Source: Podarcis gaigeae
Lineage: Eukaryota
DNA length: 64,000 nt
Assembly (NCBI GenBank): GCA_964106915.2
Contig: OZ066926.1
Strand: one strand, 5' to 3'
Every line of letters begins with the position of its first letter. Position 1 is the first letter of the stretch. Below the pieces are notes generated by a model. The model saw nothing but the letters and a program-made list of their open reading frames with translations. It made no database searches and was not told the DNA's origin. The translations under genes and the position numbers were made by a program. Shown piece by piece: positions 43,033 through 59,079 of this stretch.

Positions 43033-43134
<102 letters not shown>

Positions 43135-43961
43135 ATTGGGTCTTGAAAATTTGAAGGCTATGCTGCGATGGATTAAATTTGCTATTCTGAATATAAATTT
43201 AAAAACCCCATGTCGTGTCGTTTGTTAAGACGGTCAAGTGCTAGGAAGATTGTAAAGGCAGGCTGTAGACCCAACAACGTCTGGTTTGCCTGAACATCAG
43301 TCTTTCTCAGGATGTCTCTCCCCTCCCAACCTGCTTTGAGTCTTCCCACAATCTTTACTGAACATGAGTGGATGAGGTGACCCAATAATTATACTATACA
43401 ATTATACTTATAATTATAATTATACTATACAATAATTATGTCTTCTTAAAACATGAGAGCAAATGTAGCGTAGCGAAATTAGTGATGCAGCTATCCCACT
43501 GATGATAAAGAAGTGTTTTGGAAATGTCAGACATAAAAGAAAAGTGTCAGGGAGGGAGGGAGGGAAGACTTCTTAAAGAGAAGTATTTGCAGGAGCTGGA
43601 GGGTGGAAGACATGTTGGTTGGAAAAAGCACCCCTGCTGGTGCTTATCAGTTACTGAACTACAATTTTAAAATACAGTTTAGGGAAGACTTTTTTTTTAG
43701 ATAAAAGTTTGCTAAATGGGTCTGGGGGTGCTCAACCAAGATAACAAATGAATTTTGGATTAGTTTCATGGTTGCTATCTCTGGTGGTCAAGGAAAGCAG
43801 AAACAGGTGTCCTAAAAGGTGCGTTCATTCTGCAGCACGGATTCTGACACACCAAGTAGGGCCCAGCAATAAAATTACAGTGCAGGTGTGAAAATAGGAG
43901 CAGCGTTCAATGAAGGTGACACAGAAGTGTGAGACTGTTGGGGGAGCAGGACTCCTTTGCC

Positions 43962-44429
43962 CTAGCCTAGCCCCATGGGGTCGTGCAGCAGGCAAGCCAG
44001 GTAGCAGGAAATGGTCCACGCCCTGCCCACTTGGCCTTCCATGTTCTGCGGGTGAACAACACGCAGGAAGCGGTAGCCAAAAGCCTTGTCCGCCAGGCTC
44101 CGCAAGCTCAGCACTTGCCTCTTGGCCGCCTCCTGCTGGGCTGTCAACTCCACAGGCCCTGCCTGCAGGAACGGCGGCAACACAGGCAGTTCTTTGCCAG
44201 TCCCGGCACCGAAGGTCAGGAACCCGCTGGGAGCAGCCAGAGCATAGCCGTGCACCGAATACCGAGCCCTAGGAACCTGAGGGGCATCTCCTCCTCTGCC
44301 TCTTGACCGCCCCTGGACTTCGAACAACAGTTCTGCGCAGTCCAGAGCCACCAGTGGCACGTCATGGTGCCTGAGTGGCTGCTGTGGCTTGAAAGCATCT
44401 ATGTAGCGCTGGCTGCAGGCGACGGGGAT
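43962..44429 (-). CDS. Transposase-derived gene, last exon: degenerate DDE_Tnp_4-like (ISL2EU/Harbinger-type) domain
   Basis: Acceptor ctcctccctccag|ATC (phase 0); 156 codons to TAG. Motifs ALDCAELLFE, ALAAPSGFLTF, LPPFL, LRSLADKAFG and WTISCYLAC line up with IIDCTE, GITPxGxISF, IPPF, RIHVERAI and VCxxLxN of ISL2EU transposases. Confidence 0.8.
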   Translation of the reverse strand: MPVACSQRYIDAFKPQQPLRHHDVPLVALDCAELLFEVQGRSRGRGGDAPQVPRARYSVHGYALAAPSGFLTFGAGTGKELPVLPPFLQAGPVELTAQQEAAKRQVLSLRSLADKAFGYRFLRVVHPQNMEGQVGRAWTISCYLACLLHDPMGLG

Positions 44430-45378
44430 CTGGAGGGAGGAGAAGACATCTGTAAGAGTGGCCGGCTGCATCAGGGCAGTGACCCATCTTGTCCAGCATC
44501 CTGCTCTCACAGTGGCCCACCAGGAGCCTGTGGGAAGCCTGCAAGCAGGATCTGAGCATAACGGTACCCTCTCCCTGCTACCTGATTTCCAGGAACTGGT
44601 ATTCAGAAGCATGACTGCCTCTGACAAAGGCATTTCTAGGTTAAAAACAGGAATGGGGAACCTCAGACTCTGGGACGAATCTGGCCCTCCAAGCTACTCT
44701 TACCTGGCCCTTGGGACTCTCCTCAGGCCACACCCCTCTCCCTAAGCCACACTCCTCACTGGCCCTGCTTTGCTCCTTAACTGTTTTTGCCTGCCTGAAT
44801 TCTTGATCTTTGATGAGACGTCTTCCTTGCCTGGACAGGAGATAGATGGTATGCAGAAAAACTAGCCTGCTGTACAAAGGTAAAGTACATTTGTTCCCCT
44901 GCCCACCCTTAGCACATGGCCCCCAAGAAAGAAATGTGGCCCTCATGCTGCAAAAGATGAATGCAAACATAGGCCAAATTGCTTGATGGCTGGGGGCTCT
45001 CATCTCTGGATTGTGAGTTTCAAGGAATGAGGAGAGGGTCAACAGGAAAGGGTGCAGTAGTTCTGCCTTCTGTTTTGATTTGAGAACTGATGGGGGCAAA
45101 AGAAATTGGAAAGCAAGGATGCACATGCCACAGTCCAAACCCACAGAAAAGTTGTGAAGTCCCTCCTCTGAAACCAATAGGACCAGTTGTGGCTAACATA
45201 CACCACTTAATTTTTATGGGGACTTCACAGCTGGGTTAATTTTCATTGGGATTTGTGCTCTTAAATACCATTTTTACTACTGAATTCAAAAATGTTCTCT
45301 GTTGGGAGGGGCAACAGCCTAAAAATTAAGTGGGGGGGGGGGCGGGATCCAAACCACAGACAACAGAATGTGCTTCTA

Positions 45379-46211
45379 CAGTGGTGCCTCGCAAGACGAA
45401 ATTAATTCGTTCCGCAAGTTTTTTCGTCTTGCGAAGCACGGTTTCCCATAGGAATGCATTGAAAATCAATGCGTTCCTATGGAAACCGCCTTCAGACCAG
45501 GTCCGGGGACAGTCTGTCCCCCGACCTCTTCTGAAGGCTGAGGGGGGGGACAAGGGCTTTTCTTCCCACCCCCAGCATTTTAAAAAACCCCGGGACAGCA
45601 GAGGACTTCTCCGCTGTCCCGTCCGTTTCTCCGCTCTCCCGGGAAGGCAGGCAGGGGGGAGCAAAGACTTTTGCCCCCTGCCTGCCTTCAAAAGCCGTCC
45701 GGGATAGCGGGAAGCGCTTCCCTGCTATCCCGGACCGCTTTTAAAATGCTGGCGGTGGGGAGCAAAGCCTTTCGGCCCCCGCCGGCCATCCAGGACCTCT
45801 TCTGAAGGCCAGCGGGGGGGTGAAAGTCTTTGCTCCCCCCCCCCGCCTGCCTTCAAAAGCCGTCCGTTTCTCCGCTCTCCCAGGAAGGCAGGCAGGGGGG
45901 AGCAAAGACTTTTGCCCCCTGCCTGCCTTCAAAAGCCGTCCGGGATAGCGGGAAGCGCTTCCCTGCTATCCTGGACCGCTTTTAAAATGCTGGCGGTGGG
46001 GAGCAAAGCCTTTCGGCCCCCGCCGGCCTTCCTGGACCTCTTCTGAAGGCCGGAGGGGTGGGGAAGGCTTTGCTCCCCACCGCCAGCATTTAAAAGAGGT
46101 CCCCGGAGATTTCCCTATGGGCTTTCTTCTTGTGAAGCAAGCCCATAGGGAAATTCGTCTTGCGAAGCAACTCGCAAACGGAAAACCCTTTCGTCTTGCG
46201 GGGCACCACTG
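45379..46211. mobile_element. Tigger-like non-autonomous element with internal ~241-bp tandem duplication
   Basis: TA|CAGTGGTGCCTCGCAAGACGAAA ... TTTCGTCTTGCGGGGCACCACTG|TA. The internal unit repeats at 45621 and 45862. Confidence 0.85.
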
Positions 46212-46559
46212 TACAGCACACTTTTCTTCCCTTTCTACACATGGGGCTGGGAGAACAGTGTGAACTGGACTTCTGGACTTCATCCACCGGGGGCAGTGCA
46301 GGACTGTAGCAGAAGAGCCCTTCTCAACCAGCCTTGTGCCCTCCAACTCGCTGGGGCTGATGGGTATTGCACCTCAAAAGCCTCAGAAGAGAAAGTTTGC
46401 GACCATGCACCATTTGAAGGCTCCTTACCACCCACCCTTCAGTCCCCACCCAATTATTCTATGCTCCTTTCACCAACACCATTGCACCTCTCCTTAACTC
46501 TCTGGTGTTGTTTTTCCGGGGTGTGTAGAAAGGAGGAGCTCTTGCCCCGCTTTACTCAC

Positions 46560-47078
46560 TTGTCTCAACCTCTGCTCCATGAGCTCCGTCCAGCTGGCCC
46601 AGTAGCGGGAGGCCGTGGATTCGGAGATGTGGAACCGGAAGGCCAAGTCCTGAAGCAGCAGGCCCAGGCGCAGGCGGACGAGCACCAGGAAGAGCTGGTT
46701 GTCGGGACTGAGGGCGCTGTGGGGGCTGCCTTCCGGGGCCCCCACCTCCCCATGCTTGCCCTCGAGGAGGAAGTCCAGAAAGGCCACCAGGCGGGGGTAC
46801 CTGTCGAAGCCCGTGTAGAACCTCAGCCGCTTGCCGTCGCCCTTGACGCTCTCGAGGGAGAACGCCCCGTGGTGCGCCTGGGCCTCGCGCTGCCCCCTCA
46901 GCTGCCTGCTCAGCGAGAGGACGGTGGCGCCGCTGGCATCCAGCTCCTTGCGCATGCGATGTCCTGCAGACTCCAGCTGCTCCCGCTCCCAGCGTAGGTT
47001 CTGGTTCTCTTCCTCCAGCTGCGAGACGCGCTCTCCGAGGTGGGAAAGGAGAGCCCAGTTCTCGCCGTCCGCGCTCTC
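46560..47078 (-). CDS. Transposase-derived gene, internal exon: coiled coil, FYTG motif and HTH_Tnp_4-like domain
   Basis: cacacag|GAG ... CAA|gtgagt, 519 nt, phase 0-0. Encodes RVSQLEEENQNLRWEREQLE...LRFYTGF...LSPDNQLFLVLVRLRLGLLLQDLAFRFHISESTASRYWASW. Confidence 0.88.
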
Positions 47079-47214
47079 CTGTGTGCGGTGAAGGACAAAA
47101 TGGTGGCGTTGGCATGGCTTTCCCCAAAGTTGCCCCCACCCAACTCTGCTCCCTGCCCACCTAGTCAGCCCGGACACTGAGGTCCAGTTCCAAGGGCCTT
47201 CTGCCACTTCTCTC

Positions 47215-47682
47215 ATGGCAAGAAGTGAAGTTACAGGGAACCAGGCAGAGGCCCTTCTGGGCAGTGGTTCCTGCCCTGTGGAACACTCCTGTCAGATGCC
47301 AAGGAAATAAACAACTACAGTGGTACCTCGGGTTACAGACGCTTCAGGTTACAGACTCTGCTAACCCAGAAATAGTACCTCGGGTTAAGAACTTTGCTTC
47401 AGGATGAGAACAGAAATCGTGTGGCGGCAGCGCAAGGCCCCATTAGATAAAGTGGACCTCAGGTTAAGAACAGTTTCAGGTTAAGAATGGACCTCCAGAA
47501 TGAATTAAGTTCTTAACCCGAGGTACCAGTGTATCTGAGTTTTAGGAGACATCTGAAGGCAGCCCTGCATAAGGACATTTTTATGTTTTTTATTGTGTTT
47601 TTATATTTTACTGGAAGACTCCCAGGGTGGCTGGGACAACCCGGTCAAGATGGGCAGCGTATAAATAATAAAATTATTATTA
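47215..47682 (+). mobile_element. L2-type 3' fragment split by a Tigger-like MITE
   Basis: aaggaaataaacaacTA|MITE|TAtctgagttttaggagacatctg. The contiguous version is seen in other copies (480-540, 48415-48460). Confidence 0.75.
47318..47531. mobile_element. Tigger-like MITE family A, copy 1
   Basis: TA TSD and CAGTGGTACCTCGGGTT TIR. Confidence 0.88.
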
Positions 47683-47700
47683 GTCACTGGTCACCCTCAC

Positions 47701-47945
47701 CTGCAGCTCTCGGTGTTCTTTCTGGTTGGCTTCCACCGCTCCCTGCAGGCTAAGAAGGCGCTCGCTCTGGCGGTGGGCTGTGTCCTGCAACTCCCTCACA
47801 AGCCTCTTCAGGGCATGTCCTCCTTCTGGTATGCAGTATGCGCCGTGGTCATGCAATGCAGCCATGCCCTCGCAACAAGGTGACACGCTGGTGTTTTTCA
47901 CCTGCTCAGCTGCCACAACCAGGTCACCAGGACCAGAAGGAAGGC
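47701..47945 (-). CDS. Transposase-derived gene, upstream exon: DHxxY motif and start of coiled coil
   Basis: tttgtccaatag|GC ... CAG|gtgagg, 245 nt (phase 1 to 0), in frame with the next exon. Encodes LPSGPGDLVVAAEQVKNT...LHDHGAYCIPEGGHALKRLVRELQDTAHRQSERLLSLQGAVEANQKEHRELQ. Confidence 0.7.
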
Positions 47946-48151
47946 CTATTGGACAAAGATTGACTTATTGGTATTTCAACAGCGTGGTTGTTGCTTCAAG
48001 GGTCCTCCTTATTCCTGGCCCTTGGTGCCCTTTCCCCCCCTTCCCAAGAAGCTCTGGGAAATGTAGTGCCCTGAAAGGCTAAGGGCACAGTAACAAATTT
48101 GCTCACCTGGTGTCATCTCTGTCCTCCACCCTCCCCATGCCAAACTGTTTT

Positions 48152-48566
48152 ATCCTAGAAGACCTACAGTGGTTCCCAGTACGTTTCCAAGCACAATTCA
48201 AAGTGTTGGTGCTGATTTTTAAAGCCCTCAACGGCCTTGGCCCAGTAGACCTGAAGGAGCGTCTCCACCCCCATCGTTCAGCCCGGACACTGAAGTCCAG
48301 CTCTGAGGGCCTTCTGGCGGTTCCCTCCCTATGAGAAGTGAGGTTACAGGGAACCAGGCAAAGGACCTTCTTGATAGTAGCGCCCACCCTGTGGAACGTC
48401 CGCCCATCAGATGTCAAGGAAATAAACATCTGACTTTTAGAAGACATCTGAAGGCAGCCCTGTTTAGGGAGGTTTTTAATGTTTGATGTTTTATCATGTT
48501 TTTAATATTCTGTTGGGAGCCGCCTAAAGTGGGTGGGGTATAAATATATTACTTACTTACTTACTT
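48152..48566 (+). mobile_element. L2 LINE 3' fragment with (TTAC)n tail
   Basis: LQWFPVRFQAQFKVLVLIFKALNGLGPVDLKERL. Confidence 0.85.
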
Positions 48567-50779
48567 GAATCTTTTAGCTTCAACACTGGGATTTTTATTG
48601 ACCGAACTGCTTCACTGTGTGGCTGTATTACATTATTATTGCTGGATTTATTTGTGGGGTGTGGGTTTTGGCTTCAGGAACCTATTGAAGAGCTGGGGGC
48701 CAAATAAGAAGTTTAATTACTTGGGCAGGTATATCTTTGGTATCTGGTATCTTGAAGTAGGAGTGATTCAATTTATTAAATATATTTTTATCCCATTCTT
48801 CAGGCAACCCTCAACCCCACCCCACAACAATCCAAACCAATAGTGGCAGGCACTGTGTGTCTAAAGCTGGGACAGACAGCCTCGGGCTCAAGGACCAAAT
48901 GCCCTCTGTATTTGGCCCTTGAGACTCTTCCCCCAAACCAGACCCACTCCTTGGCTCTGCCTCTGCCTGTGAATGGCTGCTTTGAGTCTGCACTTAATGA
49001 TTTCTTGTGGCATGGAAGTTACTCTGCTGCAGTCGTGGAAAACTGGAACCCCAACCTCTGGCTGTTGACTAGAGCTGGTTATCTGCACTGAGGAATCTGC
49101 ACCGGCTGCTAATGTGCTACTGGGCCAGATTGAAGGTGCTGAGTGTATAAAAGCCTTGGGACCACCTTTCCCTATGTATTCCTACCTGTTATTCTGATAT
49201 GTTCTGCAGCAGCGTTGCTAGCTGGTCCCTTGTGCCACATGGAGTTGAGTACAGCAGACTCTATACTATGGAATTTAATCAATTTGTTGATTCACTTTTT
49301 ACTCTACCTTAAAAACCTGTTTATTTTTGCAAAGTTACCCTGCCATGTGAGCAGTTTTACATTCTTCTGATCTTTGCTTTTACCCTTAATTTTATGTACA
49401 CCACTCTGAGAAGATCTCCCCCTTTTCATTTAGTGGTATAGAAATTTATGTACGTATAAATAGATAAGCCTTAGAAAGTCCAAGCTCGCCTCTTTGCCAT
49501 CCCAAAGAAACAAGGGATTCTGTGTTTCCAAGAAGCCCATACACCTCCTCTTGCCAGCAAACCAGTGAGGATCCTCTCTGATTTTACACTGCACAAGCAC
49601 CCTGTGCTCTCCCAGAAATCTCTGCTTCTAGTGTCCAAGAAGGAGATACTTTGCTGCTGTGTCAGCTGTTAGCTAGGTCTGTGCTCCTTCTTCATGCCTC
49701 CATCTCTGGCCCACAGGGGGCAGCACCCACCCACACTGGCTCATGGCATTCCTGTTAGGAGGAGGATTACATTTTGTGGGCCTCTCCAGACTGATGTTCT
49801 ATTGCAAGTTTCATCCGCAACATGTTCTGTGACACAAAAATAGTGGTGGACTTATTCTGCTTTAGCTTGCGATGCTTCCCTGATACTACCACACGACTGT
49901 TTTGTAGAGCAACAAAAGTGGGACAAAATTAAACCGGAACATGTGTGGCATAAAAATTACAGAATATCAACAGGAAGCTGCAGGATATGGGCATCTGATT
50001 GGAAATGGAGGAATGTGACTACAGGATTGAAAGTGGAATCCTGTCTGATCACTGTGATAGCATCATGAACATAGATCATCATGAATGTGCAGTAAGAAGA
50101 ACATCTGGAGGAGTCCCTGTTTCGTAGTACCATGTCTTTCATGTACACAAGAATCACCACAACCCCTCTCCTGATTTGGGGTTAACTTGGAGATTCACCA
50201 TGACCTCACCATGACTTTGTGATGATCTTTCATAAGCAAGCAAGACAAGACCATACAAATTTTTAAAACCTGCATACATCACTGCGACTAACATAACAGA
50301 CATTAAATTTTCACAGCAAATTGTTTCTGCTTCTGCCTCTTATGTGACACACAAGATATCAGAGCAATACAGAAACCTTTTGCTATGTAAATTTAAGATG
50401 ATCTCTGTTTTGTTAGCCGCTGTTACAATATATAGTTTTAGTCAAAAGTGACGAACTGCATCCTTCCAGGATCCAGACTATTTATGGATCATAGCTGTCA
50501 ACTTTTCCTTTTTCTTGTGAGGAATCCTATTCGGAATAAGGGTATTTCTCTTAAAAAAAAGGGAAACGTTGACAGCTATGATATGGGTACATATAAAGAA
50601 AACATTGCTGCAAAAATACTTGGATCCTATTAAAATGTACAAGGAAAAAAGATACAGACGTAATACTCTCTCTCCCCTCCCCTCTCTCTGAGAAGCTATG
50701 AAGCAATAAAGTGCAGATGCATATATGAAGCGTAACAGGGAGGGATTGCTGTCTAAATTTGTGGAGCATCAATACTGAG

Positions 50780-51060
50780 GCGAAGGGGAGCCCTGAGATA
50801 GCCTGAAAGCGGCAGGTTTGGGGATGGCGATGCACCCCTGTTGCTCAGTACCTGGGAGGGACCGCAGCTGAACTCCATCGCGCCGGCTCTCCCAGCCTCG
50901 TTTCCGATCCAAAATGGCCGCCGCAGTGAATCAGCCCTATCTATCTCTACTACCACGAAAGGCGCTGTCTGGTTTTCCCTCAACCAAGATGGCAGCATCA
51001 GACTCGAAAGGAATGAATGAAGCGCGCCAGGAGTTGGGTCCTAGTTGCTGCGTATATAGT
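50780..51060 (-). promoter_or_regulatory. CpG-rich promoter and candidate first exon of the transposase-derived gene
   Basis: Local CpG cluster with two YY1 motifs (aaaatggccgcc at 50911, caagatggc at 50985). Minus strand reads gcgATGGAG...CAG|gtactg (MEFSCGPSQ, 50878-50852). Confidence 0.55.
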
Positions 51061-51182
51061 GGGTTCTCTCATTAACTTTTTTTCCCCTGAGGGAAGAGAG
51101 AATCACAAAAAGTAAACACACACACACAGTTTCGTGGCGCCTTAAAAACTAAACACTTTGATTATGGCATAAACTTCCGTAG

Positions 51183-51528
51183 GTACGTGGGTGGCGCTGT
51201 GGGTTAAACCACAGAGCCTAGGGCTTGCCGATCAGAAGGTTGGCGGTTTGAATCCCCACGACAAGCTCCCGTTGCTCGCTCCCTGCTCCTGCCAACCTAG
51301 CAGTTCGAAAGCACATCAAAGTGCAAGTAGATAAATAGGTACCACTCCGGTGGGAAGGTAAACGGCGTTTCCGTGTCCTATTCTGGTTTGCCAGAAGCGG
51401 CTTAGTCATGCTGGCCACATGACTCGGAAGCTGTACGCCGGCTCCCTTGGCCAATAAAGCGAGATGAGCGCCACAACCCCAGAGTCGGCCACAACTGGAC
51501 CTAATGGTCAGGGGTCCCTTTACCTTTA
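51183..51528 (+). mobile_element. Sauria SINE (full length)
   Basis: ggtggcgctgtgggttaaaccacagagcc...cagttcgaaagcac...ggggtccctttaccttta with an (ACCTTT) tail. Confidence 0.88.
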
Positions 51529-52026: not shown

Positions 52027-52395
52027 TAAAAAGGTAAAGGACCCCTGACAGTTAAGTCCAGTTACAGACGACTCTGGGATTGCGGCGCTCATCTCGTTTT
52101 ACTGGCCAAGGGACCGGCGTTTGTCCGCAGACAGTTTTTCTGGGCCATGTGGCCAGCATGACTAAGCCGCTTCTGGCACAATGGAACACCGAAACCAGAG
52201 CAGCTCACGGAAATGCCATTTACCTTCCCGCCGGAGCGTACCTGTTTATCTACTTGCACTGGTGTGCTTTTGAACTGGCAGGAGCTGGGACCGAGCAACG
52301 GGAGCTCACCCTGTAGCGGGGATTTGAACCGCCGACCTTCTGATCGGCAAGCCCAAGAGGCTCAGTGGTTTAGACCACAGCGCCACCCGTGCCCC
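52027..52395 (-). mobile_element. Sauria SINE (full length) with ~12-bp TSD
   Basis: Reverse complement of the 51183 element. TSD tcctaaaggctt (52015-52026) / tcctaaaagctt (52396-52407). Confidence 0.88.
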
Positions 52396-58912: not shown

Positions 58913-59079
58913 NNNNNNNNNNNNNNNNNNNNNNNNNNNNNNNNNNNNNNNNNNNNNNNNNNNNNNNNNNNNNNNNNNNNNNNNNNNNNNNNNNNNNNNN
59001 NNNNNNNNNNNNNNNNNNNNNNNNNNNNNNNNNNNNNNNNNNNNNNNNNNNNNNNNNNNNNNNNNNNNNNNNNNNNNNN
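58913..59079. other. Assembly gap (167 N)
   Basis: Run of N. Confidence 1.

Follow-up and report, generated by a model that had tools for sequence, protein, structure and literature searches.

An apparently undescribed single-copy gene beside RPL18 in jawed vertebrates derived from an ISL2EU-type transposase

A 64,000-nt stretch of Podarcis gaigeae contig OZ066926.1 (the window) carries on its minus strand a gene that is almost certainly a host gene domesticated from an ISL2EU-type transposase. The gene is real, occurs across the jawed vertebrates and is apparently undescribed. An ISL2EU-type transposase gene was fixed beside the 3' end of RPL18 in the jawed-vertebrate common ancestor, gained introns, lost the stretch that holds the second catalytic Asp and was kept in single copy under purifying selection.

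The three minus-strand coding exons proposed in an initial annotation of the sequence (exons 3 to 5 in Table 1) have AG/GT ends and compatible phases and form one open frame. Their composition is coding-like, as had been claimed, with a GC content at third codon positions of 0.60/0.90/0.71 compared with an intron GC of 0.44-0.54. The ~410-codon frame is uninterrupted as described, but the translated protein is most likely 383 amino acids long and starts at an ATG at 47864, which lies in good context. The frame from this ATG has the length of the RefSeq Lacerta agilis model and is identical to it at 368/383 positions in an exon-by-exon comparison. The ATG at 50878, at the upper end of the span given in the initial annotation, is not the start of the main frame in lacertids. 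It is the ancestral start, followed by 9 codons and a phase-0 donor at 50851, and the gecko first coding exon is identical in length. Ancestral exon 2 is shortened, out of phase and interrupted by in-frame stops in the window, and Lacerta agilis has the same first stop; the relic aligns to gecko exon 2 with a score of 80 compared with a shuffled maximum of 54. The interval from 50851 to 47946 was also examined for an intact exon with phase-0/phase-1 ends, and the candidate at 49751 proved to be this broken relic. Because lacertids lost ancestral exon 2, the ATG at 50878 now opens an upstream open reading frame (uORF) and the protein starts at 47864. With exon 2 skipped, the uORF has 24 codons and ends 33 nt before the main ATG, and it may limit translation of the truncated lacertid protein. 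The ancestral start codon survives as a uORF start in two lacertids (24 and 19 codons; window 50852-50878 and 47898-47945). The first 81 nt of exon 3 (47945-47865), which hold the old GDLVLAAE motif, are formerly coding sequence that is now 5' untranslated region (UTR). The first exon, about 50920-50852, is part of the gene, as is the decayed exon 2. The CpG/YY1 promoter reported at ~50.9 kb was recovered, with an observed/expected CpG ratio of 0.7 and a YY1-like motif (CGGCCATTTT-like, 50920-50911) within the promoter end and exon 1 that is kept in gecko.

Contigs from sequencing runs were mapped to window positions 45101-51100; where a run is called RNA, the label is a guess. Single contigs from the RNA-like runs X1, X2 and X13 (two related species, three studies) cross the predicted intron between 47701 and 47078. 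The predicted junction 46560/44429 was recovered on one side: two contigs stop exactly at 46560, as would be expected for a splice to the last exon, and their 595 and 173 further letters lie outside the covered stretch. One X2 contig extends past 47948 by 30 letters. These would account for the depth in bin 50701-50900, which is 0.57, or 3.8 x 30/200, and exon 1 therefore appears to be spliced straight to 47945. The RNA-like runs gave little or no cover of unique intron sequence and no contigs over decayed exon 2. In a DNA run of a close relative, depth was ~120 over the exons and ~100 over unique introns compared with 10^5-10^7 over repeats, and this flat profile argues for a single-copy gene. 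Most species have one orthologue cluster.

Database searches were run per exon, with L. agilis protein P0187 as a full-length proxy, and orthologues were sought with the middle exon, the gecko orthologue and a family profile. Orthologues were found in tetrapods and lobe-fins (squamates of all main groups, turtles, frogs, lungfish and coelacanth), in ray-finned fish (bichir, sturgeons, gar, bowfin, elopomorphs, arowana, clupeiforms and characiforms) and in cartilaginous fish (sharks and rays). The Xenopus loci are LOC101732849 and LOC108696677. Beneath the orthologues there is a sharp fall to intact THAP-HTH-DDE transposases (HTH, helix-turn-helix) at about 25-30% identity. The gene is tail-to-tail with RPL18 in gecko, L. 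agilis, painted turtle, Xenopus and manta ray (Mobula), with stop codons 0.6-2.4 kb apart (828 nt in the window); in arowana (L006) it lies between lectin/fn3 genes, away from RPL18. In two elopomorph gene models (P0284, P0285) the gene is fused with lectin/fn3 domains, suggesting that it shares the relocated position seen in arowana and that annotations were merged. The gene has five exons with matching phases in gecko, turtle and Xenopus; three of these junctions also occur in arowana, among them the phase-0 Q|IP intron where the DDE region starts. A tree placed 26 orthologues on one side of a long branch and 34 intact transposases on the other (SH-aLRT 100; unrooted), with a lacertid branch of ordinary length. 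With orthologues as far away as sharks and rays, and the manta ray gene likewise next to RPL18, the insertion predates the split between cartilaginous and bony vertebrates. The same distribution sets aside the proposal of a squamate- or sauropsid-specific gene. The exclusion of HARBI1, NAIF1 and the MSANTD family was upheld, the orthologue proteins all being named 'uncharacterized' or 'hypothetical', with none from mammals and none with a Myb domain.

Selection on the coding sequence was measured as the ratio of nonsynonymous to synonymous substitution (dN/dS). For the window gene, NG86 gives 0.19 with gecko, 0.28 with L. agilis and 0.30 with turtle, and pairwise values among reptiles span 0.19-0.33. 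A GY codon model fitted to four reptiles gave omega 0.14, with a log-likelihood of -3782 compared with -3954 at omega 1.0 (172 better). An omega of about 0.14 and orthologues as distant as sharks and rays agree with the initial view of an old, selected host co-option.

The proposed domain order of coiled coil, FYTG, HTH_Tnp_4 and DDE_Tnp_4 was confirmed by Pfam for the HTH (E=3.5e-20), with coiled-coil families ahead of it in the middle exon; Pfam returned nothing on the last exon, DDE_Tnp_4 included. The RFYTG motif lies near 46820 and HTH_Tnp_4 at 46715-46563. The DDE homology of the last exon was detected by pairwise and profile comparison only, HHalign aligning its profile to a transposase profile over 153 columns with a probability of 99.4% (E=2.5e-21). 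Among the 26 orthologues, HTH was found in 26/26, THAP in 8/26 (fish, ray and coelacanth) and a weak DDE_Tnp_4 in 2/26. The nearest transposase matches include an intact relative, P0248, which has THAP, HTH_Tnp_4 and DDE_Tnp_4 and is convergent with a SWIM-YqaJ gene. Its element (L007:5055-10176) has perfect ~990-nt terminal inverted repeats (TIRs) beginning GG and an A|AT|T target, and the element's cluster has several near-identical members. The YqaJ partner, GG-starting TIRs and AT target match the ISL2EU hallmarks in PMC4482050, which gives TIRs of 6-259 bp, far shorter than those of the L007 element. The ESM Atlas neighbour that follows the family's own cluster is named is4eu-1 dr. Architecture, nearest neighbours and the one relative's element that was read point to a donor that was probably ISL2EU-type. 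The gene shares with ISL2EU (IS4EU, PHIS superfamily) the order THAP (in fish orthologues), coiled coil, FYTG, HTH_Tnp_4 and DDE; it differs in having no TIRs and no YqaJ gene, in its single copy, host introns and fixed locus, and in a broken triad and extended coiled coil. The convergent neighbour is RPL18, not a YqaJ gene, in the window and five other species. The reported absence of TIRs was reproduced, no inverted-repeat pair within 42.5-52.5 kb enclosing the gene; the inverted repeats of this region are intronic miniature inverted-repeat transposable elements (MITEs) and repeats resembling short interspersed elements (SINEs).

Two-metal DDE catalysis needs all three carboxylates, and the site cannot form in the usual way otherwise. 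The first catalytic Asp column is D/E in 34/35 orthologues and is Asp in the window (codon 44342-44340). All transposases compared (12/12) have the second Asp and no orthologue does (0/35); the orthologues have lost the ~40 residues that carry it along with the SD and ADRG motifs, either by deletion or by replacement with variable low-complexity loops. Where transposases have Glu-Arg, the orthologues have Asp-Lys (35/35; window Asp at 44090-44088), and the His ahead of the Glu position is mostly Leu. Because the second-Asp segment is absent and Glu is replaced by Asp, the DDE core is very probably catalytically dead. The AlphaFold model of the L. agilis orthologue has a helix at residues 16-122 followed by the HTH and a three-strand RNase H-like core (predicted local distance difference test, pLDDT, 88). 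The C-terminal domain model has a predicted template-modelling score (pTM) of 0.87, and the HTH and core fold as one unit. Its best solved matches are transposases, weakly (ISCth4, Z 5.7; TnpA, Z 5.3), and its Atlas matches are DDE_Tnp_4 clusters (template-modelling score 0.64-0.66). Foldseek returned no match at E<=0.001, the PDB sequence search returned THAP domains and coiled coils only, and the full-length structural search was dominated by coiled-coil matches. Invariant columns are mostly in the HTH and form clusters in RFxT, in the HTH with its recognition helix and in the core; from sharks to lizards, the predicted recognition helix never varies at its E, T, R and W.

The amino terminus varies among lineages. 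The orthologues of ray, coelacanth, gar and bowfin carry THAP, as do most of those sampled from teleosts. Tetrapod exon 2 holds a basic cluster and a vestige that aligns to the THAP C-terminal CxxHF-P motif; tetrapods lost THAP, and lacertids also lost ancestral exon 2. The gar orthologue has two tandem THAP domains, and by alignment the bowfin orthologue apparently does too (proteins P0017, P0236, P0169). The label 'THAP2 protein' on the Atractosteus orthologue is probably a mis-annotation from domain similarity. The coiled coil of ~105 residues is much longer than in the donor transposases and is preceded by a conserved DHxxY motif (DHxxL in teleosts). The fish, ray and coelacanth orthologues run THAP, DH motif and coiled coil like the THAP factors THAP1, THAP3 and THAP11 (PMC13631171), but the motif is DHxxY and not D/E-H-x-Y, HTH_Tnp_4 and the very probably dead DDE core follow, and tetrapods are without THAP. 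Judged by architecture, the gene is not among the 12 human THAP genes.

Several lineages appear to be without the gene. Searches of the protein collection returned no orthologue from mammals, birds, crocodilians, salamanders, caecilians, cypriniforms or euteleosts, which is not proof of loss. In Alligator sinensis, a weak match to a decayed last exon (L008 16977-16791, minus strand; nhmmer E=3e-4 on about 48 kb) lies about 1.7-1.9 kb beyond the RPL18 stop, with side, strand and distance as expected, and is a probable crocodilian pseudogene relic. In platypus, RPL18 and FAM83E are separated by 7.3 kb of gap-free sequence in which nothing of the gene was detected, and mammals apparently lost it. 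Gene models of the amphisbaenian Rhineura floridana (for example P0001) continue after the HTH into unrelated sequence that is partly similar to window intron 45146-44807, reflecting either a lineage-specific last-exon loss or an annotation artefact.

The role we favor for the product, with a probability of about 0.55, is that of a nuclear DNA-binding adaptor in transcription or chromatin. The protein would be catalytically dead, would dimerise through the coiled coil and would bind DNA through the near-invariant HTH, joined in fish by THAP, while the dead RNase H-like fold, the DHxxY motif and the C-terminal motifs would serve as partner surfaces. A dimeric adaptor of this kind is suggested by the clustering of invariant columns in RFxT, HTH and core and by other PHIS-derived proteins, which serve in chromatin complexes (PMC9392472). 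That paper describes plant ALP1, HDP1 and HHP1 as Harbinger-derived chromatin-complex subunits; like the present gene they are PHIS transposases reused by the host, and they provide a model for function, but they arose in independent plant events and work with Myb-like partners. Several points weigh against the adaptor and its history. The role is drawn from sequence, models and analogy. Lacertids are without the basic cluster, which resembles a nuclear localization signal, as well as without THAP. DHxxY was rejected as a canonical HCF-1-binding motif because it fails the consensus. The gene is dispensable in several lineages. The orthologue subtree is only partly species-shaped at depth, with ray-finned fish and reptiles grouped at 97, and the tree is unrooted and contains no Harbinger or HARBI1 outgroup.

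Other roles would explain parts of these data. A coiled-coil scaffold or adaptor acting by protein contacts, with the HTH kept for packing on the RNase H-like fold, fits the persistence of selection after THAP loss in tetrapods and basic-cluster loss in lacertids, the lengthened coiled coil and the modelling of HTH and core as one unit; it is nevertheless unlikely given the invariant recognition-helix residues and the strong THAP domains of many fish, doubled in gar and apparently bowfin. A non-canonical nuclease, or a site for metal or nucleic-acid ends, could be formed by two residues, the first acidic one and the Asp that occupies the Glu position, which is invariant and followed by an invariant Lys. 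The requirement for three carboxylates, the deletion or looping of the SD/ADRG/second-Asp stretch and the Leu that mostly replaces His make such a site improbable. Dominant-negative dead transposases are known, and the dimerisation, DNA-binding and core surfaces of the donor are retained, as would suit a dead transposase that defends against transposons by poisoning ISL2EU multimers or occupying TIRs. Such a defence is slightly more improbable again, the gene being retained in gar, coelacanth and tetrapods, where ISL2EU is reported absent (PMC9179366), and no orthologue having been found in zebrafish or medaka, both ISL2EU carriers. The least credible alternative accepts the family and has the lacertid copy decaying after the loss of exon 2 and the start codon. 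Exon 2 is broken, the upstream ATG is out of frame, contig depth is low and dN/dS in exon 3 is 0.81 against L. agilis (11 changes), yet the lesions are common to L. agilis while the 383-codon frame remains open at high identity, dN/dS is 0.37 in exon 4 and 0.08 in exon 5, the lacertid branch is not lengthened and transcripts are spliced.

HARBI1 retains its DDE residues and is kept in mammals, unlike the gene beside RPL18. It is a domesticated Harbinger transposase (PMC9392472, PMC5753468) and is set apart by its donor group (Harbinger with a Myb partner, as opposed to ISL2EU THAP/HTH) and its locus. No paper was found that names the six orthologue LOC identifiers, and keyword look-ups found no mention of the gene in Etchegaray 2022 MBE, Han 2015, the Cosby 2020 preprint, Mukherjee 2023, Kojima 2018 and Frith 2022. 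By keyword look-up, the reviews and surveys report no ISL2EU-derived vertebrate gene; most subscription journals and Repbase Reports were outside the scope, and a prior mention is possible. Lists of transposase-derived vertebrate genes are largely built from human proteins (for example PMC9392472) and would therefore overlook an old gene that mammals no longer have.

The gene shows a stepwise stripping of the transposase: the catalytic Asp was lost first, THAP next and exon 2 last, while the HTH and the dead core stayed frozen. A broader proposal, which we hold tentatively and at somewhat less than even odds, is that this is the first recognised ISL2EU-derived host gene and belongs, still without a name, to the transposase captures that came in a wave as jawed vertebrates arose (RAG, HARBI1 and PGBD5 being others). 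It would encode a THAP/HTH regulator of transcription or chromatin in a process later dropped by mammals, archosaurs and most teleosts, and the gnathostome ancestor would already have carried ISL2EU-type elements, well ahead of the horizontal entry into teleosts that has been proposed for them. By the evidence of this gene, vertebrates had ISL2EU-type elements before sharks and bony fish diverged. PMC9179366, in contrast, found none outside teleosts, reporting ISL2EU as missing in gar, coelacanth, elephant shark and tetrapods, and proposes a transfer into teleosts 200-300 My ago. An earlier presence does not refute a later re-entry into teleosts.

Table 1. Coordinates of the gene, its neighbour and its intronic insertions in the window
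Feature	Position	Strand	Remarks
Exon 1 and promoter end	50852..50960	-	aligned to gecko exon 1
Decayed ancestral exon 2	49650..49751	-	aligned to gecko exon 2
Exon 3	47701..47945	-	245 nt; 5' UTR, main ATG, DHxxY motif, coiled-coil start
Exon 4	46560..47078	-	519 nt; remaining coiled coil, RFYTG motif, HTH_Tnp_4
Exon 5	43962..44429	-	468 nt including TAG; degenerate DDE/RNase H-like domain
RPL18 last coding exon	43033..43134	+	tail-to-tail neighbour
Intronic MITE	45377..46213	.	25-nt TIRs, TA ends, very high depth in DNA run X19
Second intronic MITE-like insertion	47316..47534	.	high-copy

The intronic repeats are high-copy in the DNA run, and their putative L2 and Tigger labels are those of the initial annotation. 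Judged by its ends alone, the larger MITE is a candidate Tigger/pogo-like element. Two inverted SINE-like repeat copies (51189-51527 and 52029-52388) lie just upstream of the promoter and raise the CpG ratio there. A run of N at 58913-59079 is a gap or a mask. A plus-strand AATAAA is at 43868, about 94 nt from the stop codon of the gene, and on the minus strand a single poly(A)-like hexamer was found, AGTAAA at 43359; from these positions, the 3' UTRs of RPL18 and the gene could overlap.

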